Shown here in pieces: positions 10,834 through 61,559 of a stretch of DNA of 64,000 nt. The stretch is from Nageia nagi (lineage: Eukaryota; Plantae; Pinophyta), in assembly GCA_050084985.1 (NCBI GenBank), contig JBITNC010000001.1:98270001-98334000 (forward strand), given 5' to 3'. The translations under genes and the position numbers were made by a program. The number at the start of each line of letters is the position of its first letter. Positions within the stretch are counted from its first letter, which is position 1. A model generated the notes under the pieces. It was given only the letters and a program-made list of their open reading frames with translations. It made no database searches and was not told the DNA's origin.

Positions 10834-10835
10834 AA

Positions 10836-10847
10836 TGGTATCAAAGC
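10836..10847 (+). promoter_or_regulatory. Primer-binding site (tRNA-iMet)
   Basis: tggtatcaaagc differs by one base from canonical TGGTATCAGAGC and lies 2 nt after the LTR. Confidence 0.9.
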
Positions 10848-11399
10848 GACCTTCTGGTGATCTCTCTCAAATATCTACATGGTAATTTTGAGGTAACTTC
10901 TTCAAATTAAGGTATATATATACTCTTATCTTATTTAAAGTTTCATGTGAAACTTAAATATTTAGTCCATTTCAATTGCTAATTATAAAATTGAAATTTT
11001 GATGTTTATACTAACATACTTTATTTTGAGGTTAATGGGCTCAAATTTAAGGTAAAATTTTACCTTAACCACATGTTAGTAGTATTTTTTTTGCTAAATA
11101 ACATATGTTATAAAGTTAGATTGCAAATCTTATGATTTTAAGACTAACATATTTAAGCTCATGTTATGGATAAAATCTAACATTTTATGTTAGTTGCATG
11201 TTAATAGTACAAAAATTGCAATTTTTTACAATATATGTTACTATTAAAAAATTACAAATCATACTATTTTAAAGAAATGAAAAGATAATTATCCATTTTT
11301 TCAGTAAATTTGCTTTAATATATGTACTTAATTTTTTATGTTAGATTAATGGTTCTAAAATCTAACATTTATTGTTCGACATATTAGTAGTATAAATTG

Positions 11400-11435
<36 letters not shown>

Positions 11436-14400: not shown

Positions 14401-16039
14401 ATTTCCATTAATAAGTCCAAGTGGGTTGTGCTTTTGACATGATTATGCTAATCTGGTGAATGGTCATCAAAATCAGAAGAATTAGCATCATCTTCAGATA
14501 TGCTAAAATTTGATGTGTCCAATCTTAAAAAATATTGATGTGAAAGAGGCAAAAAGTGATAAGAAAAAGAAAATTAATGATATAAAATATGATATCCACC
14601 TCACCAAGCAACGTAAAAAGAGTACATGGATGATCACTATAGCCTATGTTGATGAACTACCCATGTAATAGTGAGTGGTTTGAAATACTCCTATGGATGT
14701 AGGGAAGGCAGTCTAATATAGCATACGAATTGCAAAAGATAACGATTAAATAGAGTATAAACCATTATATGCAATCAAGCCGACTAAGCAAATGAAATAA
14801 TAGGTGAACATGATCATCATGATTGAGATGAAAAATCATGCAAATACCATAATAATCATTTAGGTACAATTGAAAAAATACTAGTTACTATTGCAATAAA
14901 ACCTTAAAGGCAATCAAAGCATGATTTTCTAAAGCTGTATGAATGCTGTGATGCACTATGTTATCCTGGAGATCACTCGATAGGGCATGAAACTAAGAAA
15001 TATCCATGAAAGATAACTAAAAATAAAAGATTTTAGCTCAAATCATAAATGCAAAGCACCAAATGATAAGCGAGGATCATTTACAGCTACTTATAATGTA
15101 AATGATTTAATATAATCAAACTATAATAATTATGACAACTAAAGATAAGGATTAATTAGACAATGAATCTACGAAGATAAAATATCTCACCTACCACTCA
15201 TTTAATTGATTAATATCATACACATCACATCATGTCAAGATTGCAATAATGATAGTACTACTAAGCCACGTGATGACTAAGTAATAGTGGTATCACTATA
15301 TTATTTTTATCTCTCCTTGACTATTAAATTAGATTGTTTAATCATGAGTAATAAGTTGATCATCATGACTCCCATAGAGAATTTTGTCACACACATGGGA
15401 AGTCCTTCCTTGAATTTTGACAAGGAAATAAACATATGGGTAGACTTAGAGAATGCCTACCTTCACCACTAATTGGTTAAATAAAGGTTGAGATGGAGAT
15501 AATGGGCCATCGTTATGATATGTTACAAAAATAAAAAGCTATATGCATATAGTATTACCATGAACTCTTAGTTGAGCAAAATAAACTACTAGTTGAGAAA
15601 AATTTATAGCAATCAAAGAAAAAGAGAATGATATACAAATTAGCCATGATGCAAGCAATAGCCATTATGGAATGCGATGATTAAAAAAAAAGTGAAAAAA
15701 AAGAACTCCCTGTATAAGGATATCCTTGAACCCTTTGCTATTCACATTCCAAAAGAAATAGCATCTAAATCTTCTATGGGTCCTGCAAAAGTTGGACCAT
15801 AATCTCAATCACAGCAATTAGATGCTCTGGTATGGAATGGACTTTCTTACACAAAACCTATGCATCTTTTATTCATCAAGCCTATTTTTGAAGTTAGGTT
15901 GGTGAAATATCCCTCCAGGAGAAGTATTGGTTGAATTCTTATTGAATTATTTATTCACTATTGTAATATATATGCAAACTTTGTTGATGATTCGTATTCA
16001 AAACCCAAACCTTTTTTTTTTTACATTTTTCTTGATTGG

Positions 16040-16392
16040 TTGACTATAAGTATTGGCTTGGCATCTCTATGATGACTTATAATGCAACCAAAATCCAAAC
16101 CCTTTATTTTTAAAAGCAAGTTCTTGATGAAACAATTGCAGCTCTGTTCATCTACATTTTTTTTACTTCTATGTTAGAAAATTAGATCCATTTTGATAGA
16201 TTGTGTTACAGTGCTAAATCCAACATCTTTTATTGATGGATTTTGTTACATTACTAAATCCATGCATCTTTTATTAACTATAAGTATTAGCTTGGCATCC
16301 TCCATGATGACTTATAGTGCAACATAAAATTCAAATATCTTTTGGGGATTATAAGTATTAGCTTGGCATCTCCGTGATGACTTATAGTGCAT
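16040..16392. repeat. Three dispersed copies of a ~48-bp motif
   Basis: (g/a)actataagtatt(g/a)gcttggcatc...tgatgacttata(a/g)tgca occurs at about 16042, 16276 and 16347. Confidence 0.85.
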
Positions 16393-16561
16393 TAGTGGCC
16401 ACACTCTTTTTTACTTCCATGATGATGGAAGATAAATCCATGATGATGGATTATTTACATATTGTTGATAAAATTTGGATCATTTTGATTGATTCATGCT
16501 ACCAATTTCATCATTTCTCTCTTAACTAGTAGCATGGTTAAGATGAACTTCTAATTATAAA

Positions 16562-16722
16562 ATCTTGACTCACTCTTGGTAAAGTCAAGTTTATTTATTG
16601 TGGCATCTTGACTCACTCTTGGTAAAATCAAGCTTATTTATTATGCCTTCTTGACTTACACTTGGTAAAGTCAAGTATATTTCATATGTGATATCTTGAC
16701 CTACTATTGGTAAAGTCACGTT
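16562..16722. repeat. 43-45-bp tandem repeat, 4 copies, each with an internal inverted repeat
   Basis: atcttgactcactcttggtaaagtcaag occurs at 16562, 16605, 16648 and 16693, with a diverged fifth copy at about 16808. Confidence 0.9.
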
Positions 16723-16937
16723 TCTTTATGGAACCTTATGGCTTTATGCATTTTAATGTGGTAATTAATATGGCATTTTGTGCCTTATGATATTTTTTTT
16801 CCTTTAAATCTTGACATCACTATTGGTCAAGTTGGCATTTATTCTTAGCATGATTCATGTCACATTGTCACACATGTATTTGTTTGAAGAAGTTATCATC
16901 AAGGGGGAGAAAATGTCAGGTTTTAATATGATGACAA

Positions 16938-17064
16938 CCCTCATATAAAATAAATACAAAAGAAAGAATGATAAATAGTACCCTCATATAAAACAAATAC
17001 AAAAGAAAGAATGATAAACAGTACCCTTCATATAAAATAAATAAAAAAGAAATAATGATAAACC
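16938..17064. repeat. 43-bp tandem repeat, 3 copies
   Basis: ccctcatataaaataaatacaaaagaaagaatgataaa(t/c)agta occurs three times. Confidence 0.9.
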
Positions 17065-17552
17065 ACAAAGACAAATGAAAATTAAAAAAATCAATTTTTT
17101 AATTTTTGATGCATATCAATTGGTTGATAGTGCACATGTCTTGATATATGCACATATGATATTCTTAGATATCATAGTTGATGATTTATGTCATCCTTGT
17201 TGTTGTGCATTTATGATTTCTTGACATCTTTATATGTTTTAGTGTATAGTATGATTCGATTCATGTTGATATGAATGTATAATGCTTCTAACTGATCTTG
17301 TTATAAGCTGATTGTAGTTTACAGGTTTTCTCTAAAAGATTGCATGTTACTTGTGACAACAGCTATGAGACTTCTTAGCTTTTGGCATTTGGATCTTCAA
17401 CCTTCTCTCTTTTATATAAAGTTTCAAAAGGTCTCCTGTCTCTCAAAATTGTAAAGCCTTGTTTAGATATATGTACACTTTGTAGCATGAGTAAAAACTT
17501 TTTGTAAAATTATTATTTTTCTAATCATTCCCAAAATAACATTAAGGGGGAG

Positions 17553-18154
17553 TGTTAGAACTATAATGTTATTTAGGATATTATGTAATTAATATGCTTA
17601 GTATATTAATAATCACCTAAATTTGGTTATTAGGTGATAATGAGATTCATGCATGGTGGGTGGAATAGTATTCTCCACCCAACTTAAAATAATATTGTTA
17701 GGTGGAATAGTGTCTCCATTAACAATTAAATGTAATTTTTAAATTGCAACTTAGAGTTAACTAACCAATTATGATTAGGTTAGTTAACTACCTAAGGTTA
17801 GTTGTGAGTCCTATAAAAGGAGCTCATATTGTGAACATAGGTATGGGGATGAAGATGAGAAGTGGATAGAATTATATTTGTTAGTATAGATCTTAGTTAG
17901 TAAGATTTCAAGCATTCAAGCTATGCTTCATGCTAAGAAGAGTCATGGTTGAGATCCATATGAGTGTACATTATTTAAGAGTATAGTGAAAAAGAGACTT
18001 AAAGTGGAGTACTCCATGTGATGGAGGAACCACTATACATCTTGTATTACTACGTGAGAATGCTTCTTGAGTTCTTAATTTAGAATGATTGATTGCTATA
18101 TTAGATGAAGGTCCTATAAGTGTTCTTGGGTTATGGAATCCCTCAATTCCATCA
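17553..18154 (+). repeat. 3' LTR (602 bp)
   Basis: tgttagaactataatg...ttccatca. It is colinear with the 5' LTR apart from about 40 extra bp at about 17680-17720 that duplicate ggtggaatagt.tctcca. Confidence 0.92.
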
Positions 18155-41127: not shown

Positions 41128-41748
41128 GTTCCAATATAAAAAAACTCTTCCAATACAAAATATGTTTTTAGGTGTGCCTTCTATAACTAAATTTTTTAAA
41201 ATGTATAGTTAAACCAATCCAAACTCCAAATTATGAATCCAAATGTTATTTTTAATTCATTATAGCTCAAAAAGCATAAGTTAACAAACACCTAAGTTTT
41301 GCAACTAAGATTGTGAAAATGTATGGCCATCAAGGTAAGGTCTTTGACAAGAATAAACAAAATATAGTTAAATCAATACAAACTATAAATTATGGATAAC
41401 GATTTATTATATTATTTTTATATTAGAATTATAATATAAGGAAATAGAACATGAAAAAAATATAGTGTGATAATAATACATTTATCAATTTAGGATCACT
41501 TTGAGATCAGATGATACAATAAAAGTGAAGTATATTAGTTTCAATATAAAAAAACCTTCCAGTACAAAATACATTTTTAGGTTTGAGTTCTGCAACTAAG
41601 ATTTTCAAAATGTATAATTAAACTAATTTAATCTACAAATTATGGATCCAAATGTTGTTGTTTATTTATTATAGCTTATAAAGTGTAAGTTGACAAACAT
41701 CAAAGTGATATGTCTAATTTATTTTATTTTGTTGATGGTTGTAGTAGT

Positions 41749-42599
41749 TGTAGAACCTAAAAATGACCCTCGTTCGAAAGTCGATCAGAAAGGGATTAAA
41801 AAAATTAGCACAAATTATAGAAAATCATAATCTTCGACTTCAATACCCACTCGCCAACGATTCTGTACTTAGCAAAGCTAAAACAAGTTACAAGCTCATG
41901 CTCATCCATAGTTCAAAATAGGGATGATACACATCTTGAATGCTAATCCTCAATTTGAAAGCGACAACTAAAGCCATTTAGGATTCTGGATTTGCTTTGA
42001 ACCCAAATTTTGAGGTCTAAAATTGACAAATCAAACAAACTCAAGGATCTATAAATACAACCTCATACCTTGAGCAAAGTGACCCCTTTTCGAAGTAAAC
42101 TTATGTGTCAGAATCTTTCCAGGACTTGTTATGAGATTGCTTCATTTTATGAATGTTATGTCCTATTTAGTGCATATTGAATATTTTGTGTGAACATGTA
42201 TGTTTGATGTATTGTTTTGGCGTGTGTGCAAGGTCCATAGGTGCTGAAGCTTCAAGCCACCGAAATACATCGAACCAGGAGCCATCTAAATTCCATAAGA
42301 GAGCTTACACAGAAGAGAGATAAAAATCCTTCCATACAACTTAAGTGCAGAAATGCCAACGATTCACATCGGATGCTAGCGATTGAAGGGAAATGCCAAC
42401 AACTCATCTTGATTTCAAGCAACTCTGTAAAGCCCAAGGAGGCTAAAAACCTAGCTTGTATGAAAAGCCCTTCCTAACAAGGCATCAAATCTAGGGATCC
42501 ACATTGTAAAATTGAGGTTACCTCAAAAAGTAATAAAATATACATTGGATTAAATGTGTGTTTATCTTGTTTGCTAACAAGTTACTTTTTGGGATAACA
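41749..42599 (+). repeat. 5' LTR (851 bp)
   Basis: tgtagaacctaaaaatgaccctcg...gggataaca. TATA box ctataaata at about 42049. Confidence 0.93.
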
Positions 42600-42602
42600 T
42601 TT

Positions 42603-42616
42603 TGGTGCTAGGAGGG
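42603..42616 (+). promoter_or_regulatory. Primer-binding site, probably degenerate tRNA-Asn type
   Basis: tggtgctaggaggg lies 3 nt after the LTR. It resembles TGGCGCTAGAAGGAGGG, which I recall as the complement of the plant tRNA-Asn 3' end, with one C>T and a 3-nt deletion. Confidence 0.55.
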
Positions 42617-44419
42617 TCTCGCATACAACGACATCACATACTATACACGGGGTTTCTTCTCGTTATTATAGTCTAGTGTCTCTTCGTATCTTGTGGTTTC
42701 CAACATTCTGATCTTATTTTCATGTTTTGTGTTTTTAAAGGTCATTAACAGAGTTGCCAACGATTCAACCTTGAATGTCAGCGATCATACTTGAAATGTT
42801 AGCAATTCACATGGAATGTAGGTGATTCAGATACATAGGTGAATTCCCAACTTGTGTCAATACAACAAGCACAATGTAGGTACCTAAACTGAAAGATGGG
42901 AACGAACCTCTTGTTTGTGATCTGTCTGCTCAAAGTGCATGTAGTGATGGGTAGAATAAAATGTAGGAATGCATTTAGTTTAAGCTTATTTTTGAAGGTC
43001 TAACTCATCTTATTTTACTTGTTTGTTGGGTTGGGATCATTGTATCACATTTAAGACTTCTCTTATCCTATCTACTTATGCTCTCCCTTTGTGCTTTTAT
43101 GCGATCTTAGGTGACCAAAATGGGTTTGATAGGGAAGAGGTAAATGAACTTTCACTTTCACACTACTACTAAGTTGGCTAATGAATTGACATTAAGATAC
43201 TTCCATACTTAGGAGGGGTTATGAACTCTCATTAAAATGAAAATGAACCTAAGGACAAAGAATCAGTTGAAGTTAGCATAGCACATTAAATTGTTAATGA
43301 ATTTGGTGGGCACGTTTACATAAAATACTTTTATTAAACTAAGTATGCTCTTACTTTTGCAGCCTATGGTGATTTGAAGTGATCAAAAAAGTTTAATAAT
43401 GAGGGGTAAATGAACTCTCACATGGTTTTAATACTTATCTCACAATAATACTCTTACTTGCCTGCCCTTACTACGTTGAGAGGTGGTTGAAGGTTGATGT
43501 GACTCAAAGAGGGGTAAATGAATCATATTTAAGGCAATTTACATTCACTTAAAAGGCTTCCTACATGTTTGCCCTTAACACTCCGAGAGGAGGTCGAAGG
43601 TTGATGTGACTAGTAAGAAGAAGAAATATATCTCACTAAGTACTTCCACAGCTAGAAGAATCTAATAAATCTAATTTAATCTTGGTGAATGAATATCACT
43701 TAATTTGGTAATGAATCTTGTGGGTACTTAGATCAAGATTCATTAAAGTAAAACATTGTTTTTAATCACATAAACATAAACTTAATCAATAAACATGTAT
43801 GTTGGGAAGGGTTAAGTTTGCATATCATATGTATTTTTGTTTATTAAATGCATAGTCATGTGTCCTTTTAAAATGAACATCAATGAGTTAGATGTAATTA
43901 CCGATCATTGATTCTTATATTCTCAAGTTTCCACTGATCAAAATCATAAGCTTTAGAGCCAAAATCCAGAGATGAATACCAGGGTCATAGGGTAGAAGTC
44001 GTAACTATGCGTTGGACAACTATAAAAAAGGGACTACCCTTAGATTTAATCATCAAAGTAGATCTCAACGATATTCCCCGAGCCCCATTGCACTAAGGGG
44101 ACCACTTTAAGTACCAAGCCATGACTTCACCTTAGACATCCTTTTAGGATTACCAGGCTACCTTGTTAAACACATGACTAGAGCACAAAGTTAGGAAAAT
44201 TAAGCAAAATTAAAAATAAATTATTCATCATACACTTAAGCAATATTAATCAAATTTATTCAAATCCTTAACAAAGATAAACACATCGAAAAGTGAAAGT
44301 TCATGTAGGGTGTTTGTGCATCTTTTATTTTCCTGTATAATCTAAACATAAAAAATGAAAAATATAGTTACTGTGTGTTATTTGTATTTATTAAGTATAA
44401 TTTAAAGTAAAATGAAACA

Positions 44420-47400
44420 ATGGTTCAAATGCGTTCGCAAAAGGCTAAACAAGAATAAGTACCTCAACGTATGTTCGATCCAGGTGAAGGAAGTATTGTT
44501 GGACCTAGAAGGATTCCTTCACAAATGCAAACACCTTGAGAACAAATGCTTGAACCTTTACTACGGGAAATTTATCTCAAAGATTTGGTCCAACCTATAG
44601 TAGAAGAACCTTGTGAGGAGTTGGATACCTATAAAAGCCTAGAGAATCCGCAATCTACGTGCAAACTTAACAAATCTAAAGAAAGAACATGATTATGTGT
44701 TGATAGAGGCTAGAGAACGCTTAAAGTAGTCAAGAATGCCTCCATCCTCTCCTTATGTACATAGTGTCTCTCTATATATAACACATTATAAGTTGGACGA
44801 ACTACCCTTAGACACATCATTAACATCGAGAAACTTGAATAAGTCGGATGAACTAGAGTTTCCTTCGAGTATGCATATAGTTGATCCTATATTACAACAA
44901 GGGCCTTTTAGGCCTAAGTTTACTCATGTCAAAAAGTAAATCCTGATGGGTCATTAGTTCTTACGTATGTAAGAAGAGTAGATTATTCATCTTCCACCAT
45001 ATCTAGAGAAATGAAATAAGATTATGATAAGATTTCTACACATTCAGGAAGTCTTGTGTCACAAAATTTACATGGATTCAATGTAAGCTACAACCCTTAT
45101 CAATTACTAAATCCAAGGGAAATACCTTCTATGAAAAGAGATGAACCATCGACTTAACAACAATTACAAATCATAAGAATTGAGAATCTACCTTAACAAA
45201 GACCATCTGAGTCAAGTAGATCACAACACTGGTTACAAGGAATTCCTCCATATATGCACAAAAATGTTGAAGCATCTCCAAAAGATGCACACTTATCAAG
45301 GGAAGATTGCTAGTGCAATTTACAAGAGTACGATCAAACCTTAGCTCAAGCTCATAAAACAAAGGAATTGAGAAGGTTCACTGAACAATATCAAACTCCA
45401 ACTCAAGATATGTGGAATCCACAATCTTTTGCATAGGTTTTAAATGTCCAACCCCAAGTGGAAACTCAAGTCATACCTCAAGAGTAGTAGACTTTAGGTA
45501 TTCCATCTCAACAAATACAACCTCAAGTCATATCTCAAGTGTTATACACTTTAGGTATGCCTCAACAAGTTTAAACCCTGGTAAGACCTCAAGCACAACA
45601 ACAAAATGTATTATGGATATTGAAAAAAAAGGTAAGTAAGCTATATATCAAGGTCAAACTAGTATGAGTCAAAACGTAAGTAAACCAATTCAAACTAGAA
45701 CAAGGTCAGGGCCACCATCCCCTAGGGTCAAAGTACATTCCCCTAGACCTTGATCACTATCATTTTAGGGATGAGTGCATCAAGATCCATATCATGCTAG
45801 AAAACAAGAAGTTATATTAAAGAATAGGAAAGATCAAGGTCAAATAATTACTCCTCGATTGCAAGGTAGATAACAAAAATATCATATGCCTCATCAACAA
45901 CGTCCTCCTAGAATTCCTCAGCAGCCTCAACCATAGGTTAGGCCACTAGAATATCAAGTTACTTATCAACATCCTTTACCACTGGTCAGCCACAAGAATA
46001 TCAAGTTCCTTATCTACCACAAATTCTCGAAGTCCCTCAACAAACACAACAAGAAATGGTACCTTATGATGAAGGATATTATGAGCAACAATACGAACCT
46101 TTGCAAGGATATCAAGAAGAAAGTAATCCTGAAGATGAAGATTACATTTAGGAAGAGACCCAACCATTAGCAAGAATAACCAAAGAAGATAGTGATCTTG
46201 TGAAATGATTAAAAGAAATAGAAGAAAAGATCCTTATGCAAGATAAGAAGAAGTCATCGTATGAAACAATTTGCAACAAGCCAATACATCCTAGTGTTCC
46301 TAAGAAGGACATTCCTTATAAGTTTGAAATACCCAAGATTGAACCTTTTAAAGAAAAAGAGGATCCCAAAAAACATCTAGAAGGTTTAAGTATTCAAGCT
46401 ATTTGATCACTAATGACAATGTATTAATGCTACATGTTTTTCTCATGATGCTTGTTGGACAAGCCATGGATTGGTACAACAACTTGCTTGAATATAACAT
46501 TAAATCATATTCTCAGTTAGCAAATCTTATTTTACAACACTTTAGGATTAATGTTAAGGATAAAACATCTATCACTGATCTTACAAGATTACAACAATTC
46601 CCATATGAATCCATTAGTGATTTTGTTTCACGATGGAGAGTTGTGTCAACAAGTATGCCTTACACTATGCCTCAAGAAGAATCGATCAAATTATTTAGTC
46701 AAAGTTGTTTGATACCAATTGCTAGTATGTTAATTATCCAACAACATAAGACCTTTGAAGATGCTATTTCTTAAGCAGTTGTTATTGAAAAAGTAAAAAT
46801 TTAAGATGGAGAAATAAAAGGTAATAAACACGAAGGTTATACAAAACGCAAAACTCAAATGGATAAGCAATTACTAGCAAATAAGGTCTCCATTACAAAA
46901 TCGAATGAACCAACACAAACACAAAATAATCAAAGGGAAAATAGACCAAGAAGGAACTATACACCCCTATCCGAATCCCCTTTTGATATTTTGAGAAAAT
47001 TGTGTGACCATCAGGTGATCACATTGCCTGACATAAGGCAAGATAATACTATAAATAAAGAAAGCAAATGGTACAAGGAAGAAGAGTTTTTTCATTTCCA
47101 TCATCAGAAGGGTCATGATACAAACAAATGTCAAACTTTAAAGAACATAATTCAAGACTTGATAGACAATGGAAAGCTGAAAGTAGATAATCCTGTTACA
47201 ACTCGTAATCAAAATTTAGGAATTTACCAAAATCCACTTCCTCAACATCCAACTAATGTTATTTCTTTACATTCAAAGGAAAAACAAGTAAAATACAAAT
47301 GGAGTCAAGATGATGCAAACTTTGTAGGCATGATAAGTGTAACTACTAGAGCTCAAAAGATCCAAGGAGAGCAAAATGGGTCAAACAATCAATAAGATAA

Positions 47401-48100
47401 GTTCATGTGCAAGCACACATACCAAGACCCCAACCACCTAAAGTGTTTGTAAAAGGTGCTTTGCAACAACTAAAAAACTCACAACTAAAGTTATCCTTGT
47501 TTGATTTGTTACAATAATCCAAGGATCATAGAGATGCCATGAATCAGTTGTTGCAAACGATTGAGTTGGATATTAATGATCCTGAAAGTTTTGCAACTTT
47601 TGTGGGAAATGTTAAATTAAGCCAAAAGCCTGTAATAACCTTTTATGATCATGAAATAAAAGATTCTAATGGGACACAAAATTTAGATCCACCCTTGCAT
47701 ATTATAGCTAAGGTTGATGGAAAAACATTTAAAAGAATTTTAGTTGATGGAGGATCAACTATAAACATTATTTCCACAACTGCATACAAGAATTTGAATC
47801 TCTATTTTTCCCATATTTGTGCACCTTCTCTACAACTTAAAGCATTCAACGATGCTTTATGTTAAATGGTGGGATCAATTTTGTTACCTGTCACCATAGG
47901 AATGAAAGCTGTGCAAACATTACTATAAGTAATTGAAGGGGATATTACAAAATACAATATTCTCTTAAGGAGACCATGGATTAAAGATATGCAGTGTGTT
48001 CCATCTACATATCATAATTGTTTGAAATTTATTCATAAAGGGGTACTACACTGTGTCCTTGGAGATGAGAATCCATATTCACATTGTAATACTACTCATT
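44420..48100 (+). pseudogene. gag: gag plus aspartic protease, disrupted
   Basis: Start MVQMRSQ at 44420. KFEIPKIEPFKEKEDPKKHL; LVGQAMDWYNNL..IKSYSQLANLILQHF; LQQFPYESISDFVSRWR; knuckle FHHQKGHDTNKCQTLKNIIQDLIDNG; protease RILVDGGSTINII and YNILLRRPWI. Confidence 0.9.
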
Positions 48101-49299
48101 TGCCTAATGATCTAGCCTTACCATCTACACACTTTTTTACAACAACCATATCAAAAAGTGAATCCTTGATGACCAATTCTTATAAAAATGGAAATATTTC
48201 TAATGTGTCAAAAGATAAGCAAATTATAAACCAACGTAAGCCATGTAATCATAGTCAAGAAGAGAATATTGGTTTACAATCAAAGTTAACAGTAACATCA
48301 CAAGAAAAGAAATCTTGGGAAGAAAGAGCTAAAAAGTTAGATGAAATGAATGAAGCTTCTTCTTCAAAAAGTTCATCTCAAGTAAATGTATCATCTCAGG
48401 ATGCTGAGATTAATGAAAATAAATCATTAGAGATTTATCTAGTAACGATACAATTATTTGACTTAGGCATAGGAGAATATGATATCAATGATGTCATATT
48501 CGATATTCCTTCTACTCAAGATATGGGATGACCTAGTCAATCTCCTTGTGTGGTAGGACAATTAGTACCATTAGGGAGAGAACCTAATCAAACAGTGTTT
48601 GTATATGCGGGAGCCGAGGAGCCTAAATCAATTCCTTTACCTGAACCCAATGAAGGTGTATTTTGTATTACATTGGATTATCTTTCTCCTTTTGTGCTGT
48701 ATTTTGTTCAAAAATATTTCTGTAGATGTTAATGGAAAGGGTATGGCCTTATACGTTATGAACAAGGACCTAGGTACGTCATATTGACATTTATTATCAA
48801 CTACCAACAAATAAAATAGGACTAGGATACAAAGAAAAGAACAAGAATCAATCTTTAATGGAAATAGTTGATCTAGAACTAGAAACCCTTGATTATGAAG
48901 AATAAGTGCAAGATTATGAATGTGGATCTAGCTAGAGTGAAACACAATCAAAAGTGATAATCCCTGAATACCTATATTCTAATATCATCTCAATCAACAT
49001 GGTGCAAATTGATGAAATCTCTAATAATCAAGGAAATAAAATTACTTTAGAATGGTCTAGAAATGAGGAACTATTCACAATTAATGAAGACACTATAGAT
49101 TTTTCATTCATTTCTAAGAACCCTACCATACAAGAATTCAAAGATATAAATATTATATCTTAAATGTTGGAACCAACTATGAATACAACTTTAATTGAGA
49201 AAAATATCGATGAAGATGAAGAATATAATGTGAATGACAAGCATTGTATCCCTATGCCTAATCAGTTAGAAGATGGATCCCATATGCTGGTAGAGGAAA

Positions 49300-52200
49300 C
49301 AGTGACTGTAGACTTAAGTGATGATCCTAAAAATCCCAAGATAGTACAATTAGGAACATCTTTCAATGAAAAGGAAAAGAACATATTCATAACCATTCTA
49401 AAAGAGAAACAAAAGGTATTTGCATGGTCTTATGCAGATAGGCTTGGACTAAATTCGAAGTTAGTCGTACACAACCTAGAAATGAAGGAAGATGCTAAAC
49501 CTGTTAAATAAAAACTAAGGAAAATGCATCCTGCAATTGCTTTAATGGTGAAAGAAGAATTGCAAAAATTATTTAAAGAAAAGTTTATCCAACCTATTGA
49601 CTAATTGGATTGGATTTCCAACATGGTTCCGGTTAAAAAGCCTAACAAAAAAATTCGAATTTGCATAGACTTTAGAAACTTGAAAAAAGCATGTCCGAAA
49701 GATGATTTTCCTCTTCCAAATATCTATAATTTAGTAGATTCTATGGTTCGACATGAGATGCTTTCATTAATGGATGGATTCGTTGGATATAATTAGATAA
49801 GGGTAGCTACAAAAGACTAATATAAGACAACATTATCAGTCTGCAAGGTACCTTTTTTATAAAGTGATGCCCTTTGGTTTGAAGAATGCTGGGGCAACTT
49901 ATCAAAGAGAAATGACATACATCTTCCATGACCATATGAATGACATTATGGAAGATTATGTGGATGACCTATTGGCTAAATCAAAAACTAGAGAGCAACA
50001 TCCATAAGTACTAATTAAAATCTTTGATAGATTGCTAGAACATAATGTGAGATGAAATCCGAAGAAGTGCATGTTCAGAGTTACTTTTGGAAATTTATTA
50101 GGTTTCATTGTATCTAGGCATGGAATATAAGTAGACCCCAACAAAATAAGAGCTATAGTAGATATGCCTCCTCCTTTGAGTATAAAACAATTGCAAAGCT
50201 TACAGGGGAAATCACAAGCGATCAAGTGTTTTATATCTCAACTATTTGACAAATGTAAGCCTTTCAATAAATTGTTAATAAAGGAAATTACTTTTGATCG
50301 GGTAAAGAATAGCAAGAGGTGTTTGACGAAATAAAATATTATCTCTTATCACCACCAGTATTGGTTCTCCCTAGAGAAGGAGAACCATTTCTACTATATT
50401 CGTTAGCCATCGAAACTGCCTTAGGTACTATGATTGCACAAAAGAATGAAAATAACAAAGAACAAGCTATATATTATCTTAGTCAAACCTTAGTTGACTC
50501 TGAAATAAAGTATCTATACATGGAAAAATTGTGGTGTTTGCAACAAAAAAGCTTAGACATTATATGTTTAACCATACAACTTATGTGATTTCCAAAGCAG
50601 ATCCACTAAAATATATGATGAACAAGACATCAAAATGCAAGAACATTCAAGCAGATTATGTATTTAATAGTTTGAATTGCAATATATAAAGGTCAAGTTA
50701 TAGTAGATTACCTTGTAGAAGCCCCATTAGAGGATGATAAGATGCTTGTAATTGAATTACTAGATGAACACGTATTTCATCTAGATGAAATGAAACTCCC
50801 CGTGGAACCTGAAAAGGATTGGGTAATGATCATTTATTTTGACAAATCTAGATGTGAACAAAGTGGAGGTGCTGGCATTGTATTTGTCATGTTGCAAGGA
50901 GCACCCATTCCCTATTCTTTTAAACTAAATTTTCCCTATACAAATAATAATGTTGAATATGAAGCTTTAATAGTAGCCATGAAAATCGCCATAAAATTAA
51001 AAATGAAAAGAGTAAAAGTCATTGGTGATTCATTATTACTAGTAAATAAAGTTAAGAGAATCTTTTAGTGTAAGAAGTATTTACTTTAGAAGTATAATAC
51101 GTTATTCAATTTGTTATTACAATATTTTGAAAAACATGAATTAGAAACTGATCCTAGATCAACTAATAGGTTTGCTGATGCTATGGCATTAATTGGATCA
51201 CTCATACCACAAGATCCTCATAGATGTATTATTCATATTGAAGTGGTTCAAATTACTGAATCTTCCTTAGATGAAAGTGAAGAATCTTATGAATTTTGAA
51301 CATTACCATGGAAGATAAGAACCTATGGCATGATCAACTAGTTAAATTTCTAAGCGATGAAGTCATATCAAAAGACCTAACTAAGTTAGCCAAAAAAGAT
51401 TTCAAGATTCTTGTTATTAGATGTTAAGATATGTGTTGTACAATAAGATTTTAGATGGAATACTACTAAGCTGTTTTGAATGGGCTGATTCACAAATAAC
51501 TATCTCATGTGTACATGATGGGATATGTGAGGACACTTCAATGGTCCCACCATCACAAAGCGATTGATGCGCATGGGTTACTATTGGCCTACAATGGAAC
51601 ATGATTGTATTGAATATGTTAAAAAATATTTTAAATGTCAGCAACATGCTAAGTTATATATTCAACCATATCAATCCTTAACACTCATGCAATCCTTGTG
51701 GCCATTTTCAAGGTGGGCATTAGATTTGATAGGATAAATCTCGTCTACATCATCAGAAGGTTACAAGTTCATAATTATAGTGACAAAATACTTCACTAAA
51801 TGGGTGGAAGCTATTCCCATGATTTCAACTAAAAGACCTAAGATATCAAAATTCATCAAACATCATATTATATGTTGCTTTGGAATTTCTCCTCAAATAG
51901 TGATCGATAATGGAAAAAATTTTAAAATAAGTAAGTGTTAGCCTTGTGCAAAGGTTATCACATCAGGATTAGTTTTTAAACTCCATACTATCCCAAGGGA
52001 AATGGCTAAGTTGAGGTGACAAATAAAACCATTAGAAGTATTCTATTGAAAACTGTTAATAACTCTCATAGAGATTGGCATGCAAGAATTCCCCATGCTC
52101 TATGGGCGTATCATACAAGCATTAGAACTCCTACTGGGGCAACACCCTTCTCCTTGGTTTATGGAGCAGAAGTAGTGTTACCCTTAGAAATTGAAATCCC

Positions 52201-52573
52201 TTCCCTATGTGTGGCTTTACAAGATTATATAACTAATGAATTAGCCCTCTAGACAATGTTGGATCAACTCCTTCTACTAGACAAAAGACGAATCCAGGCC
52301 ATGGAACACATTAGAACTTATCAAAATTGAATAAAAAGAACCTTTGATAAGAAAGCCAAAATTCATGAATTCAATATAGGAGACTTAGTACTTAAAAAAT
52401 ATCAACAAACCTCTTGTATGGAACAACAACTCCATGATAAATTTGCCCTGAATTGGCTTGGACCATATGTTAAGAATTTTTTTGGATCAAGAGCTTATCA
52501 ATTAGTTGATATAAAAGAGAACAAAGAGCATGAGCCTATAAACATCACATGTCTTAGTCCTTTCTATAGTTAA
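49300..52573 (+). pseudogene. pol: pol: RT, RNase H, second (archaeal-type) RNase H and integrase, disrupted
   Basis: RT: VFAWSYAD, WISNMVPVKK..KIRICIDFRNLKKACPKDDFPLP, MPFGLKNAGATYQR, YVDDLL. RH: LLSPPVL...QAIYYLS. aRH: YFDKSR..GAGIV..TNNNVEYEAL..IGDSLL. INT: HDGICEGH..GYYWPTMEHDC..C, WALDLIG, FTKWVEA, TGATPFSLVYGAEVVLPLE. Confidence 0.95.
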
Positions 52574-53838
52574 AAAATCTTATATTTTTATTTGTATATA
52601 GTGTAGATATAATTAGGATAATATAGTACAAGGAACTAATAAATACATTTAATAATTCTCATAGAGATTGGCATGCAAGAATTCCCCATGCTCTATGGGC
52701 GTATCATACAAGCATTAGAACTCCTACTGGGGCAACACCCTTCTCCTTGGTTTATGGAGCAGAAGTAGTGTTACCCTTAGAAATTGAAATCCCTTCCCTA
52801 TGTGTGGCTTTACAAGATTATATAACTAATGAATTAGCCCTCTAGACAATGTTGGATCAACTCCTTCTACTAGACAAAAGACGAATCCAGGCCATGGAAC
52901 ACATTAGAACTTATCAAAATTGAATAAAAAGAACCTTTGATAAGAAAGCCAAAATTCATGAATTCAATATAGGAGACTTAGTACTTAAAAAATATCAACA
53001 AACCTCTTGTATGGAACAACAACTCCATGATAAATTTGCCCTGAATTGGCTTGGACCATATGTTAAGAATTTTTTTGGATCAAGAGCTTATCAATTAGTT
53101 GATATAAAAGAGAACAAAGAGCATGAGCCTATAAACATCACATGTCTTAGTCCTTTCTATAGTTAAAAAATCTTATATTTTTATTTGTATATAGTGTAGA
53201 TATAATTAGGATAATATAGTACAAGGAACTAATAAATACATTTAATAATTCTCATAGAGATTGGCATGCAAGAATTCCCCATGCTCTATGGGCGTATCAT
53301 ACAAGCATTAGAACTCCTACTGGGGCAACACCCTTCTCCTTGGTTTATGGAGCAGAAGTAGTGTTACCCTTAGAAATTGAAATCCCTTCCCTATGTGTGG
53401 CTTTACAAGATTATATAACTAATGAATTAGCCCTCTAGACAATGTTGGATCAACTCCTTCTACTAGACAAAAGACGAATCCATGCCTTGGAACACATTAG
53501 AACTTATCAAAATTGAATAAAAAGAACCTTTAATAAGAAAGCCAAAATTCATGAATTCAATATAGGAGACTTAGTACTTAAAAAATATCAACAAACCTCT
53601 TGTATGGAACAACAACTCCATGATAAATTTGCCCTGAACTGGCTTGGACCATATGTTAAGAATTTTTTTGGATCAAGAGCTTATCAATTAGTTGATATAA
53701 AAGAGAACAAAGAGCATGAGCCTATAAACATCACATGTCTTAGTCCTTTCTATAGGTAAAAAATCTTATATTTTTATTTGTATATAGTGTAGATATAATT
53801 AGGAGAATATAGTACAAGGAACTAATAAATACATTTAA
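52056..53838. repeat. 593-bp tandem triplication of the integrase 3' end and adjacent sequence
   Basis: tctcatagagattggcatg starts at 52064, 52657 and 53250 (period 593). The copies are about 99-100% identical. Confidence 0.97.
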
Positions 53839-53852
53839 ATTAGAAAGAAACA

Positions 53853-54830
53853 ATGATCAAGAGGAGGAAAAGCATCCATGTACCACTGGACAAAAGAGGA
53901 ATTTCACAAACATTATGGTTTGAGAGGTCTCGATACTTAGGGGATAAAGCTATATCATGACTTTCAATATTTACCTTCTGGGGATCTCAAAACTTCCTAC
54001 GACTACCTATTGAAATACAAAAGATTATAGCTTTGAACTATTGTCAAGGAAAGGATGATGGGTGGGAAGCACATATCAATGGAGATGACATTGAAATTCA
54101 TATAGAATCAAGGTACATACTTCTTGGTTTTTGGCATTATAGAACACAAATACATAAAATAAACCTATTATGTCTATATTGGCCAACTATAGCCCCTAAA
54201 CTTATACTGGATTGCATAATTAATGATTTCATCTTGGACATTGCCATGTACACCCTTGATAATTTAGGCTTGGTTTTGAATTGGATAAATCATCTTGCAG
54301 AAGATGTGTGCCATCAAAAGCTAGTATATGATTTTTCTCCTTAATTTGTACCCAAACCTAAGAGGCCAAAAAGAATTAAGCAAAAAATCAATCAAAGCTT
54401 TGTTCATTTAAAATCAAGGTTTCCTTATCCTCCATCTCATAACATTCAAAAGAGATTCCTTGTAAGACAACCATAAAGAGGGTTCCACTCAACAAAATTC
54501 CAATTTGATCTTGCCAATCAAAATTTTATGGATAGGTATAGAGGAGATGCTTATATGAAGCTATTAGGAAGAAATCCCTCTACACTTATTTCTCATTTTT
54601 TATCCCTACCAAAAAGAGATTCAAAAGGTGATTATGAATTTTTATTTTTAATATTTGAACATAAAGGATTAATATATTATTCTTCAATTACATTTTGAAA
54701 GAGAATTTTTATGAATAGTCCATCGTCCATGGATCAAAAAATAGTGAACAGACGTTTCAATCAAAGATGCACAGGACCTGATCCAAGATTTGAAGATCGA
54801 GAATGGGTAGGATAATTTTACTATCCTTAA
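53853..54830 (+). pseudogene. Accessory ORF-A of the Ogre/Tat element (about 325 codons, decayed), with an F-box-like motif and an NLS-like segment
   Basis: One frame runs from ATG 53853 to TAA at about 54830 with no frameshift and five internal TAA/TGA stops. It includes the tracked ORF 54033-54344. Motifs: FLRLPIEIQKII (53994-54029) and PKPKRPKRIKQK. Confidence 0.6.
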
Positions 54831-54895
54831 TGCTTACCTACAATTAAGGATTAATTGTAGCTAAAATTTACTATCCTTAATTGTAGGTAAGCATT
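54829..54895. repeat. Perfect 23-bp inverted repeat with a 21-nt loop
   Basis: aatgcttacctacaattaaggat (54829-54851) is the reverse complement of atccttaattgtaggtaagcatt (54873-54895). Confidence 0.95.
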
Positions 54896-54908
54896 CACTT
54901 GTGACATA

Positions 54909-55472
54909 ATGAGTTATCCAAATTGTGTTTTTGAACCCATCTCTCAATGTGCATCTAATCCTATCCGCATTCCACCCACCAATTGGGATTTATCATCACC
55001 TATCACTTTACATTTGCCTTGCACATTTATATATTCACATATACATCTATCTTCTCTATCAGAAAATGTGGAACTTAATTGCTTTTATGATTTACCCGAA
55101 TGCATCCAACACAAAATCCTATTCATGGCAATGATGTCAAATGTTTTTGACAAATCTAATCAAGCCTTTTACGACCTAGAAAACTCTATGGATGTGAGTA
55201 TTGTGATAAATCATGAATCATGTTGGGGAACCTATTTTGTTTATGACATACCTAATGAAGAATTCCTCAAAATCTTGATGCACTTATTGTATTGTCTAGG
55301 GTTTATTTGGAGAATAACACTCAATGCATGTGTGAATACCTTTGTAGGCAAGTTCATTTCATTTTTCGATCCACCATCTTTGCACCCTCATGAATCATTT
55401 AATCCACTCACTATAGCTCACATTATGTCACAAAATATATTCCATTGGGATACTATGTTGTCTCCACAATAA
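54909..55472 (+). CDS. Accessory ORF-B of the Ogre/Tat element (187 aa), with an F-box-like motif; function unknown
   Basis: It is the longest uninterrupted ORF in the window and starts with ATG. Motif FYDLPECIQHKIL starts at 55083. The same frame continues past the stop into ORF 55494-55688. Confidence 0.5.
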   Translation: MSYPNCVFEPISQCASNPIRIPPTNWDLSSPITLHLPCTFIYSHIHLSSLSENVELNCFYDLPECIQHKILFMAMMSNVFDKSNQAFYDLENSMDVSIVINHESCWGTYFVYDIPNEEFLKILMHLLYCLGFIWRITLNACVNTFVGKFISFFDPPSLHPHESFNPLTIAHIMSQNIFHWDTMLSPQ

Positions 55473-57379
55473 TGTGCAATCATACCTATTGGCATGTCAA
55501 GCATACCTTTCATACATTTTGTCATTTTTGCACCATTTCCCATCGTTAGTTGTTGCAAATCTACATATAACATAGGATTCTCTTTGATGTGTTGGATGAA
55601 GATTAAAAGCAAAAAACTCAAAAAAAAATTCAAAAAATTTAAAAATCCAAAAAATTCTATATATATATATATATATTTATATACTTAAAAATTATATTTT
55701 TGAAGCATCTTGGCTATTGGGTGTGCTGCTCATCATATCTATTCCATTCCATTATATATACTTTGTATTACCTATCATCTGTGAGTGATAAAACTATTGA
55801 GCGTCAAACATGTTAATGTTATGACTCACCAAGCTATATATATCATCCACTTATCCATCTACTATCCATACACATAACTGTACTTATAAATAAGGAAGTG
55901 TTTTAGGAATATAATATTCATATTTGATTTGGTCAAAGCATCTAATGTGAAGTTTTTGAAACTTCACATGATAAACAAATAAAACTATGATACATCATCA
56001 ATATATTACAAACTCATGCACATTTTCACACTTAAAATCTCAAAAAAATTAAAAGCTAGATGTTGCTTGAGCATAATTTCGAGTAATTATTCATCCTATT
56101 ATTTCATTTCATCTCGAACCCAAGAGATAGGATTCAAAAAAAAAGAAAAAAGAAATAAGAAAAAAAATATAAGATTAAAAAAAAAGGAAAAAAAAGAGAC
56201 AAGTAAAATTCTTGGGTGATTATAGTATCTTCTATCAAGGCTATGTATGCCTAACTAACAATAGAGCAAGGTTGTAGCAGGATCTAGAGGTTAATCTCCA
56301 TCAGGGCTATGGATATCTATCTGGCAGTGGGGCATACCTTACGAAGTGGCAACATGTCGATTCCTAATAGTGGACCAATGTACATTTTATATGGACCAAT
56401 TAGCTTACATATTTTATGCTCTTGAAACATTAAGCTTGTGAGTGTCAAGAGAAGGAAATGGACATCATTGCCCACACATGAGTTCACAATATAGTTATGT
56501 ATGTGTATTATAACCTTGTTTTATATCATCCCTAGTAGATGAAATTTGAACAAAAGATCATTTGATGAAATCAATAATTGAATGTCTTATTTAATACACT
56601 TCTTTATTATATTATCCGTCTATCCCACTTCATGATATATACATTATTATTATAAGCTTGATGAGTTATTTACATGTCATGTTTGACATTTGTATGGTTA
56701 TATCATTCACCTACTTATCCATTTTCATGACCAAATATTTACACACCATCACCTACTATCCTATTAGATTGAAAGCCAATGTTCATATTTTACCACATGT
56801 TCATTCATTTTACACATCCATATGTTCCCATTTCCATAAATAATTTGTGTATTGTTTCATTATGTTTGTTTATCCATTCCTTGTCATATGTGTACATCAA
56901 TCATCTATGAAATAGCCAAGAACAGAAAATGATGCAATTTGAATCTGTACTACTATAAATAAAATATTATTCCAAAACAAAACACTCCACATGTATCAAT
57001 TAACTTCTAGCTATCAGTATTCCATCTAAATAACTTGAACAACTAATCATAAACAATGCATATCATTTCATTAATAATAAAAATAAAATCCCTAACTCAT
57101 ACATCTAGTAAAACATGTCATCAATAGCCATAAATCATGAGTATAAAACTATAAATATGCACAAAATATCATCATCAATAATAATCATAATCATCATAAA
57201 AGTAACATCAATATCATCATCATCAAAATATAAAATATATAGCAATTAATCAAAAAATAATCACGTCCATCCATGAAGCTACATCATGCCCTCCATGATT
57301 CCAAAAATAAGTAAAGTCAAATCTATATAGTCTAGCAAATAACATCATCATGAAAAATATAACAAACTCTAAGGCATCC

Positions 57380-59726
57380 TCATGCACTTCCCTCACCCTC
57401 ACCTTTGTTCTCTTTAGTACCTCAACCTAGATGAGTAGTGCCAACTGATCCACTAGGACTAGCCTCTTATCCATCCCTATTTAACTTTGAAGAACCTACA
57501 AGATGTTGAGATGATACCCCTACAGTCACACTCCTGCTATGGGACAAAGCTGATATGACTAGTTTTCTTTGGGTGCTGACAGTCCCCTAAGCCCCATTGG
57601 TTGTAGCCACTACATGTGCACTAATATCAATGGGAACATGCCCACTAGGAGGGAGAGGATACTGACCACTTGTATTAAATGTTGGAACACCACTCAACCA
57701 AGTATGAACTATACTCATATAAAAATACCTCAACATACAAATGCCTCACACAAAAGATGAGAACTAACTGTCTACCCCTACAGAAGAGCTTGCTATACGT
57801 TCCTACTACTCTTAAAACCTTTGGATGGTGGCACAACCCTTATCCCTCTCTCGCTTGTAGTGATTTCGCTTATCTCTATATCTATAATGATGTGAGTTGG
57901 CTTGAGCCAAATGATATCGTAACTCATATATATCACCTAACAAGGAGTCAATACTAGGCACCTATGATGGAGGTACCTCATCCCCTCCTATGTCTCCCTC
58001 CTCTCCTTGAGTAGCCTCCTCCTCACCCTATGTGGCCCTCTCAAGAACATCAGTTGCAATCTCTAGCTTGACCTCCTTAGAGATATCTGTTGTAGGCTCT
58101 ACTCCAATCTCCTCTGCCATACCCTCCTCAACATCTACTCATTGCTGTACCTGACATCCCTAAGCCTCCTCATCCATCTCCTTTAACTCTACCTACCACT
58201 AGGAAGTGAAAGCCTTAGTCACTCCAACATCATCCTTAGCAGACTCCTCCTCAACATCTTCCTCCTAAGTAGGTTTTGGTTTTGCATACACCAAGGTTTG
58301 TAGTCCATCAACTAGAAGGGTTCCATCTCATTGATATCTCATTAGCTTAGGGGGCACATCTTGAACCAATGCAAATGATGCTCACATGCTCAAAATAAAA
58401 GTACTCCATGAACTCAATTCCCCTACCACTCAGGACCCTCGCCTAATGAATATCTTTTAACTCAACCTCGAGCTCATCCCATGTCAGGTATAGATGGTAT
58501 GTCCTGAATAAGACATGATCAGGCACTAGATGGGATAGCATATCTTTGTAAAATCCTACATCCTACAAACTTCATCTATTTGATGCAAGTAAAAGTCATC
58601 CCTCCACCTCATGAATCCAGTTGAATACTCAGCATGGCTAGAGAAACCGAGAACATGTAATCCTAGGGGATGAGCAAATGGAATATGCTCATAAGCCCAT
58701 GCCTGTAAAGTGATCATCATCAAAAATGAAGCTTGATGACCCTAAGAATTGAAGAATAACTCTCTATAAATTTGAGCTAGTAAATTAGGTGTCCATGCAT
58801 AAATCATCCCATGATGGACCATATCTGCAATAATGGATAACAAGGAGCACAAAAATCTACCACTTCTAGTTTTCGAAAGAGCATAGCACTAGATCAACCC
58901 CATCAATATATAAAAATCTAATATTGCCCTACTAATCCTCCATCCAGTACTGGTAATAACGGATGGCCCCTAAACTAATCTCTGAAGCTATAACATACAC
59001 CCTATCTTCTCCATACAAATGAGAGATGGTTAGAAATGCACAATCCCTATCCACTATGTGCTAAATCCTACATCCATGAATAGGCAAGTGATATAGACAA
59101 TGAATGTCCTCCATTGTGATCATCATCTCCCCTATCAGGAGATGAAAGGTGGAAGTTGTAGAATCCCACCTCTCGAAAAGAGCAACCAATAAAGCGTACT
59201 CCCAATGAATCTGACCCATGAAGGGTCCCACTCCAAAACCAAATATCTAGAAAAATGCATGGTCTATGATAGTAAGAAACTAATATCCCTCTTGCAAAAT
59301 CGAAGGATATCACCCCCATCGACTGAATACATCATGAACCTAAAAATAAAAATTGCATAAGTAAAAAGAAACTAACTAAAAAAAAAAAGTTGATGACCCA
59401 AAGTCAGATGCTGATGATCAAGAAACCTAGTTGCAGGTTCATCGATGTTTGACCCTTAATGTCAATAATTTTGCTAAGCCTTGACCCTGGTTGGTGACCA
59501 TGATTGAGGGTTTTCAAAATTTTCAAAAAGCTAAAAAAATAAGCTAAAATGAAAAAATAAATGGTTGAAAATGCTTTAAATGCAAAAATAAAGACTTATA
59601 CGATTTTTATTTTGTGAATTGCTGAATAAAATATTAATTACAGGTAAAAGACTAAAATGAAGGTTTAAAAAACCCTACCTCATCCTAGATTGGTCTCCTC
59701 TAGCTAGCCGGTCATCGTTGTGGCAT
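57380..59726 (-). pseudogene. Antisense Plant Mobile Domain (aminotransferase-like, MAIN/MAIL1-related) gene of the element, two exons, disrupted by stops
   Basis: PMD signatures: ALLVALFERWDSTTSTFHLLIGEMMITMEDIHCLYHLPIHG (about 59200-59070) and YAWTPNLLAQIYREL...TLQAWAYEHIPF (about 58800-58680). An acidic tract and a coiled-coil-like segment follow. Exon 1 is 59726-59679 (MPQR*PAS*RRPI*DE), joined by a phase-0 GT..AG intron at 59678-59340. Confidence 0.85.
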
Positions 59727-60645
59727 GCTGGCCCTTAAATGTGAACAATAGCTAAAATAGTGGTCAAAAGTAAAAAAGAACATGGGTAGCAAGATGATAA
59801 GAGCTTTGAATTGAAAAAGCAAATAATAAAATGATAGTGGTTTTATTCTTTTTATTCCCACTGCACCTTGAAATGTCGACGACTGACGACGGATGCCGGT
59901 GATTCTTCCCAAACGCAAACGATTTCTTGAAGTATTAAAAACAACATATAAATTGGTAAAAAAAAATAATATAAAAACTTTTACAAAAAACAAAAATTCA
60001 TTTGTCCTCACTTCTAAAAAAAATAAAAAATAAAAAAGGGAAAATGATAATATAACCCTCCTTCCATGAATGAAAACAAGGTTGAAAATATAATATTCTT
60101 CCTATTATTGGAACACAATAAATCAACATTGAACAAGTCCTTGGTTTAGAAATTTACTCCAGGCCATGTGAATGAAAAGGACTTAAGCTTCTTTAACATT
60201 TTAAACTTCAAAAAATTGAACATGATTTGAAAATGAAATAATCTTTTGCACAAGATTATCACGAAACCCCACTATCAGCATAAAAGCCAGTACTCTCAAA
60301 ATCAAACTGATATACACAAAACTAAGCTTAATGACACATACTTGCTTTGACATGCAAAGATGAACAAGAGTCTCTTCATGCAATTTTCACAACAAGCACA
60401 TAGTATGTATGGTTAATACAAGCAATGTTTTAGTATAAATTTCAATTATTTTCAAAACGCATCAAGAGCAAAAGATGAAAACATTTTTAACCATGATTCA
60501 ATCAATTGAACTTGACTTTCTCGAGAGACTAAGTCAATTTTAAATACCGACCCCAGAGTCAAATTATCAAGCAAAGAAACACAACCTTATTTATTTTTGA
60601 ATTATCACCCACTTCTAATAACTAATAATTCAAAAAGGGGAAAAA

Positions 60646-61550
60646 TGTAGACACCTAAAAATGATCCTCGTTTGAAATTTGATCACAAAGGAGCTAACCA
60701 ACTTAGCACAAACTATAGAAAATAATAATCTCTAGGTGATTGGATTGGTTTGTTGATGATTCATCTTAGTATTTAGTGTCTGATACCCAATCACTAGTGA
60801 TTATATACTTAGCAAAGCTAAAACAAGTTATGAGCTCATGCTCATCCATAGTTCAAAATAATTATGATATACATCTTGAACCCTATCCTATATCTGTGAA
60901 AGCGATGACCAAAGCCATTTAGGATTCTGGATCAGCTTTGAACCTAGATTTTGAGCTCTAAAATTGATAAATCAAACAAACTTAAGAATCTACAAATACA
61001 ACCTCATACCATGAGCAAAGTGACCCCTTTTTGAAGTAAACTTATGCTTCTAGAATCATTCCAGGACTTGTTGTGAGATTACTTCATTTTATGAATGTTA
61101 TGTCCTATTTAGTGCATATCGAATATTTTTTTATGAACAGGTGTGTTTGATGTGTTGTTTTGGCATGTGTGCAGGGTCCATAAGTGCTGAAGCTTTGAGC
61201 AATTGAAATACATTGAACCAAGATCTATCCAAATTCCATAAGATAGGTTATATAGAAGAGAAAGAGAGAAAAAAATTCCTAACATACAACTTAAGTGCAG
61301 AAACACTAGTGATTCACATCGGATGCCAATGATTGAAGGAAAAAGCCAACAACTCATCTTGATTGTTAATGACTCTGTAAAGCCCAAGGAGGCTAAAAAC
61401 CTAGCTTGTATCAAAAGCCCTTCCTAACAAGGCATTAGATTTTGGGATCCGCATTGTAAAATTGAGGTTACCTCTCAAAATAATAAAATATACTTTGGTA
61501 TTAAATGTGTGTTTATCTTGTTTGCTAACAAGTTACTTTGTGGGATAATA
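60646..61550 (+). repeat. 3' LTR (905 bp)
   Basis: tgtagacacctaaaaatgatcctcg...gggataata, with the terminal CA mutated to TA. It is colinear with the 5' LTR apart from about 50 extra bp near 60735-60780. Confidence 0.93.
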
Positions 61551-61559
61551 GTAGTAATG

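Follow-up and report, generated by a model that had tools for sequence, protein, structure and literature searches.

An old Ogre-clade retrotransposon of Nageia nagi with two sense genes of a new family, an antisense PMD gene and a conserved non-coding block behind pol

In a 64,000-nt stretch of the Nageia nagi genome (contig JBITNC010000001.1 of assembly GCA_050084985.1, positions 98,270,001-98,334,000, forward strand; hereafter the window, with positions counted from its first letter), we analyzed the genes downstream of pol in a single complete long terminal repeat (LTR) retrotransposon at 41749-61550 (19,802 bp). Two of these genes, ORF-A and ORF-B (ORF, open reading frame), lie in the sense orientation, and a third, antisense gene encodes a PMD domain. 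Taken together, the data make it likely that the element represents an Ogre sublineage with three accessory genes maintained by selection and an adjoining non-coding block, in which ORF-A and ORF-B serve the element and are not detectably F-box proteins. The PMD component was already known for Ogre, and the ORF-A/ORF-B family is new within the known class of extra ORFs. In the window copy every gene of the element is broken, and ORF-A, ORF-B and the PMD gene are all dead.

The post-pol region spans 53760-60645, bounded by the end of pol at 53759 and by the polypurine tract (PPT). ORF-A (53853-54830, plus strand) starts at a conserved ATG at 53853, and a preceding sequence-only reading of this DNA had presented it as an ORF of about 325 codons. 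This frame is not open in the window copy, with 6 in-frame stops in 326 codons; because the other two frames contain 22 and 27 stops over the same interval, we interpret frame 0 as a decayed coding frame. The remnant includes module 1, with the head motif LPIEIQKII at 54003-54029 (identified, like that of ORF-B, by motif comparison across lineages), a basic linker resembling a nuclear localization signal (KPKRPKRIKQK..., 54345-54473) that is kept in the related loci L001, L003 and L012 described below, and, of module 2, just the initial "LPK" (54606-54614), the remaining ~740 bp found in siblings being missing. ORF-B (54909-55472, plus strand) is open over 187 aa from its ATG, in agreement with the predicted minimum of 187 aa, and over 193 codons from stop to stop, a length reached in 0 of 1000 shuffles of the region; its head motif, LPECIQHKI, is located at 55092-55118. 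The integrase end, ORF-A and ORF-B share one reading frame, with six stops between the pol stop and the ORF-A ATG. Just 5' of the ORF-B ATG, near the lost module 2, a perfect 22-bp inverted repeat (54830-54894) can form a hairpin that is absent from all sibling loci. An Rfam scan of 53760-60645 matched this hairpin to mir-7563 below significance (26 bits for a threshold of 80) and gave no other match.

Relatives of these genes were recovered exclusively as unnamed sequences. An exhaustive HMMER search with ORF-B across 1.84 billion representative proteins yielded 15 relatives of 71-258 aa (E-values down to 7e-27), all 15 derived from Logan, ENA or JGI contigs, and 18 further unnamed fragments came from a profile search seeded with the ORF-A module; a separate protein homology search with ORF-B alone found no relative. 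Scanning JGI metagenome contigs with a 7-sequence alignment (a wider, 16-sequence alignment had no sufficiently conserved stretch) identified 12 loci, L001-L012, which correspond to eight distinct elements. When protein pieces from the window were placed on these loci by tblastn, a common order emerged: gag-pol is followed by ORF-A (pieces A1-A4), ORF-B, the spacer and, in opposite orientation, the PMD gene. Synteny of the two sense ORFs with the antisense PMD gene therefore extends to related elements. The whole order is spanned by L003 and L004 only, and L007 covers it from the integrase end onward. Identity to the window was 55-75% for pol, 30-62% for ORF-A depending on the piece, 32-46% for ORF-B, and 40-67% for PMD. 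In the flank of one of these elements (L003:16385-17893, equivalent to L002:9112-10620), we identified by eye an ORF resembling a plant NRT1/PTR-type transporter, which confirms the plant origin of these "metagenome" contigs.

The relatives also reveal the architecture that the window copy has lost. Their ORF-A products are ~500 aa long and comprise a basic N-terminus, module 1 (~130 aa), a basic linker of nuclear-localization type, module 2, and a tail, and alignment of sibling modules indicates that module 2 is paralogous to module 1. Open versions of parts of this protein persist, including 201 aa from the conserved ORF-A methionine in P0021 and 259 aa covering module 1, linker and module 2 in P0017. 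ORF-B proteins are shorter, ~190-260 aa across the family. Both ORF-A modules open with F-x-x-L-P-x-E-I-Q-x-x-I, and ORF-B has a head of the same type; the head motif previously noted as common to ORF-A and ORF-B is thus confirmed and extended to a third site, in ORF-A module 2. In one locus (L011:1971-2645), a deletion spanning the linker, module 2 and the head of ORF-B has fused the end of ORF-A module 1 directly to the central part of ORF-B.

Several signals identify both sense ORFs as true genes of the family. L001, L003, L004 and L012 retain the ORF-A ATG, with stops ahead of it. In alignments built on DNA alone (blastn), mismatch rates at codon positions 1, 2 and 3 were 0.29/0.21/0.38 for ORF-A and 0.29/0.21/0.41 for ORF-B, compared to 0.29/0.17/0.35 for RT-RH. 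The ratio of nonsynonymous to synonymous divergence (dN/dS), estimated by the Nei-Gojobori method on protein-guided alignments, was 0.18-0.56 for ORF-A and mostly 0.15-0.55 for ORF-B, with a value of 1.11 for the close pair L001-L011, whose pol yielded 0.90. Distant pairs gave 0.08-0.19 for pol and 0.13-0.24 for PMD, and dN of ORF-A and ORF-B was about twice that of pol. The conserved ATG, codon periodicity, dN/dS below 1 and stop depletion therefore mark ORF-A and ORF-B as genuine genes, and these substitution patterns indicate that ORF-A, ORF-B and PMD evolved as protein-coding genes under purifying selection during the active life of the lineage. Presence and frame conservation of both sense ORFs in siblings and dN/dS below 1 had been set beforehand among the tests on which the cassette could fail, and it survived these.

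The spacer that separates the converging ends of ORF-B and the PMD gene measures ~2.1 kb (55473-57589) and is longer than the ~1.7 kb initially proposed. Much of it is a conserved non-coding block (55600-56750) with 68-78% blastn identity in all lineages, even though synonymous sites are saturated between these lineages, and its core (56188-56534) contains two motif copies of the ATCAGGGCTATGGATGCCT type located ~70 nt apart. A second, short conserved non-coding block at 56912-56976 is ~81-85% identical to L003, L004 and L009 and ~74-75% identical to L001 and L007. Mismatches in the blastn alignments of the spacer were evenly distributed over codon positions (0.23/0.22/0.25), i.e., without codon periodicity, and RNAalifold detected weak covariation in the conserved spacer alignment, from which we claim no structure. 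The block might act in cis, for example as a binding site, as a terminator or through an RNA signal.

On the minus strand, the PMD-domain part of the antisense gene (58446-59342) matches Pfam PF10536, siblings being 50-67% identical to it by tblastn. Pieces were searched individually rather than as a joined or spliced model: the piece at 59064-59246 matched at E = 6e-12 (45.8 bits for a cut-off of 34.9), one more piece matched weakly, and a sibling piece (L009:3711-4199) scored 44.7 bits. The domain is colinear from 59342 down to 58446 and is interrupted by a minimum of 5 in-frame stops and 2 frameshifts; the window PMD gene is a pseudogene. The antisense PMD gene of the sequence-only reading is hence present and converges tail to tail with ORF-B, but it is no longer intact. 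Directly upstream of the conserved V[QHR][DE][IV]F motif, with no ATG in between, a stop triplet at 59343-59345 (minus strand) is conserved in 5 of 5 lineages and possibly marks a 3' splice site of the gene. At the other end, a conserved C-terminal block (57590-57745, minus strand), 35-53% identical by tblastn in L003, L004, L007 and L009 and with a dN/dS of 0.11-0.33, had no Pfam match. Host MAIN, MAIL1 and MAIL2 proteins, which reportedly form the PMD-C family (Nicolau et al. 2020), share the PF10536 domain with the window gene; the latter differs in lying within a retrotransposon, antisense to pol, in being broken, and in its additional C-terminal block. L003 and L004 also differ little from each other across pol, ORF-A and ORF-B (dS 0.2-0.4) but strongly in PMD (dS ~1.05), a contrast that suggests recombinational exchange of the 3' part between element lineages.

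The element carrying these genes is an old, inactivated Ty3/gypsy retrotransposon of the Ogre clade (Tat lineage; Macas & Neumann 2007; Neumann et al. 2019, REXdb). It is bounded by identical GTAGT target-site duplications (TSDs), read directly at 41744-41748 and 61551-61555, and by a 5' LTR (41749-42599, TG...CA) and a 3' LTR (60646-61550, beginning with TG) in plus orientation, delimited by blastn against each other with their ends read directly, that are 82% identical over a 904-column blastn alignment. A putative primer-binding site (42603-42621, plus strand; read directly) begins with TGG 3 nt past the 5' LTR, and the PPT, AAAAAGGGGAAAAA, is found at 60632-60645 (plus strand), directly abutting the 3' LTR, and not at 59930 as previously placed. 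Primer-binding sites of the Ogre clade are complementary to tRNA-Arg. The gag-PR-RT-RH-aRH-INT region (46352-53759, plus strand) is heavily decayed into fragments of at most 200 aa, of which the last PR piece ends at 48528 and the RT pieces begin ~630 bp further on, at 49164; the region has Pfam matches to Retrotrans_gag, RVT_3 and RNase_H and is colinear with the pol of L003 and L004. One piece at 50676-51065, between the RH and INT pieces, corresponds to aRH (RVT_3, 8.5e-8; RNase_H, 2e-5). Upstream of gag, 44691-45127 (plus strand) is 52-57% identical by tblastx to L004:215-637 and is probably the remnant of a 5' extra gene of the Ogre ORF1 type. A 593-bp unit taking in the C-terminal end of the integrase, the stop codon and ~80 bp beyond it is repeated in tandem in ~3 copies (52043-53838, plus strand); since these copies are 97-98% alike and the LTRs 82% identical, the triplication postdates insertion.

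Placement in the Ogre clade is based on the aRH between RH and INT, the 5-bp TSD and the antisense PMD ORF (Neumann et al. 2019, PMC6317226), and the earlier description of a TSD-bounded Ogre/Tat element is borne out by these features and the LTR pair. The size of 19.8 kb lies within the 7.7-24 kb reported for the clade, and the remnant 5' extra ORF combined with an antisense 3' PMD ORF is likewise Ogre-like, whereas the short LTRs (~0.85-0.9 kb) and the two sense post-pol ORFs set the element apart. In the survey of Neumann et al., an antisense 3' ORF was present in 60% of Ogre elements, a sense ORF on the 5' side in 21%, and a sense 3' ORF of at least 250 codons in 6%; PMD was found in 434 elements, 431 of these as antisense 3' ORFs of Ogre (supplements 4 and 5 of PMC6317226), confirming that such ORFs are an established feature of Ogre/Tat, and Retand elements carry Transposase_28 instead (PMC6317226). 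Sense ORFs of at least 250 codons between pol and the 3' LTR (eORF-3'F) had no named domain in any Ogre element, and the domain table of that study contains no F-box (PMC6317226). Relative to this length definition, ORF-A of the window is broken and ORF-B has 193 codons; the relative P0017 reaches 259 aa within ORF-A.

ORF-B-like sequence also occurs elsewhere in the window. A second LTR-bounded element of ~7.8 kb (10393-18152), with LTR-like repeats at 10393-10831 and 17713-18152 that are 94-95% identical, has no recognizable gag or pol; on its minus strand it carries two diverged copies of the C-terminal half of ORF-B (13826-14071 and 14655-14851; ~30% identity, E-values down to 6e-9). It may be a non-autonomous relative.

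ORF-A and ORF-B had been described as F-box-like, and we considered whether they are divergent adaptors that recruit SKP1/SCF and, together with PMD, counter silencing in the manner of polerovirus P0, which along with nanovirus Clink is a viral F-box-like hijacker. In favor of this proposal is the LPxEIQxxI head following an aromatic residue, which is conserved in all three modules across lineages and resembles the first helix of the F-box, with its pattern LPxE[IL]xxxI; in addition, ORF-A and ORF-B evolve faster than pol, as host-interacting factors often do. A four-residue LPxE often matches by chance, however, and the similarity ends with this short motif. The conserved tryptophan of the head-motif modules lies ~20 residues past LP, as opposed to ~28 in canonical F-boxes. 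Across 44 family sequences, comprising window pieces, 9 pieces from siblings, and homologues of ORF-B (15) and ORF-A (8), no match to the Pfam F-box families (PF00646, PF12937 and related) appeared at E-values up to 10, and four profiles covering the motif region or whole modules retrieved unrelated matches and no F-box protein among 177,635 PDB sequences at the same threshold. AlphaFold2 models were too unreliable to judge the fold (pLDDT 52 for ORF-B, 42 for an ORF-A module); at this low confidence, they show one long helix for ORF-B and a helix followed by a beta-hairpin for the module, not the three short helices of an F-box, and a Foldseek search with the ORF-B model (pLDDT 52) gave no match. 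Searches of the ESM Atlas returned no usable match for the ORF-A module and matches at noise level for ORF-B, including an F-box cluster at rank 26 (score 0.77) that is within noise by the tool's own statement. No paper joined the terms "F-box", "LTR retrotransposon" and "additional ORF" in a full-text literature search. By sequence comparison, then, ORF-A and ORF-B are not detectably F-box proteins, and we regard the SCF-recruiting interpretation as distinctly improbable. A broader version, in which the two ORFs would form a new adaptor family with up to three divergent heads binding SKP1 or another host hub and, with PMD, would disable or degrade silencing factors, seems slightly more doubtful still. 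An anti-silencing role of the cassette is possible.

Another explanation would be that ORF-A and ORF-B are pieces of a host gene, transduced by the element and carried as passengers of no use to it, since extra ORFs of plant LTR retrotransposons are heterogeneous and possibly of various origins (PMC6317226, PMC7264820). Yet only 15 short relatives (none above 258 aa, none annotated) were found among the 1.84 billion proteins, all 12 loci with context show the ORFs in the same Ogre setting, and purifying selection across deeply diverged element lineages is unexpected for a useless passenger. We therefore consider this passenger reading unlikely, although it is conceivable that the element acquired the sequence long ago and then domesticated it. 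It is extremely improbable, in turn, that the frames are non-coding and open by chance or through AT-rich composition in a region kept for RNA or DNA reasons: the adjoining spacer is indeed conserved without coding, and neither structure model is confident, but the three-base mismatch periodicity of the DNA-only alignments, the confinement of stop depletion to a single frame, the conserved ATG, and the long open fragments in several lineages all argue against this view.

Among known systems, a close parallel to ORF-A and ORF-B in position and behavior is provided by the "env-like" ORFs of Athila/Calypso and SIRE elements (reviewed by Vicient & Casacuberta 2020), which are likewise found at this position and orientation, conserved within a lineage, fast-evolving, and devoid of a known domain. 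Unlike these, ORF-A and ORF-B show by eye no N-terminus resembling a signal peptide, the N-terminus and linker of ORF-A are basic, and a tandemly duplicated module is followed by a second, small ORF; similarity to Pfam ATHILA ORF-1 is absent. We favor the interpretation of ORF-A and ORF-B as element-encoded accessory proteins that would serve retrotransposition. Their basic stretches suggest that the proteins are probably nuclear; given the position of the two genes behind the pol stop, expression probably relies on sense transcripts that are sub-genomic or spliced. The repeated head motif may mediate binding to a partner common to ORF-A and ORF-B, of either host or element origin.

Several observations weigh against this interpretation. 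The function proposed for both ORFs is drawn from composition and analogy, and Pfam, PDB and the ESM Atlas offered no relative of either. ORF-B shows no more than a hint of homology to the ORF-A modules, in the head regions, which align in register but weakly (hhalign E = 0.0012, probability 19%), whole-length hhalign comparison detecting no similarity. All related copies are decayed, and no intact member of the family was seen. The dN/dS values are rough, as dS is saturated (>1) in distant pairs and the alignments were protein-guided. For close pairs such as L003-L004, all genes look neutral, the pattern expected when copies decay once inserted.

LTR retrotransposons, foremost among them Ogre elements, fill much of the genome in plants with large genomes, and reviews describe their extra ORFs as heterogeneous and of unknown function (PMC6317226, PMC7264820). 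The attractive but unsupported label of F-box proteins hijacking SCF is here removed before it spreads. In its place stands a protein family with no described relative, in which a module is repeated, the start codon is conserved and purifying selection can be measured, together with an adjoining conserved non-coding block. ORF-A, ORF-B and this block hence represent concrete proteins and a concrete DNA element for work on the replication of these retrotransposons or on their interaction with the host.

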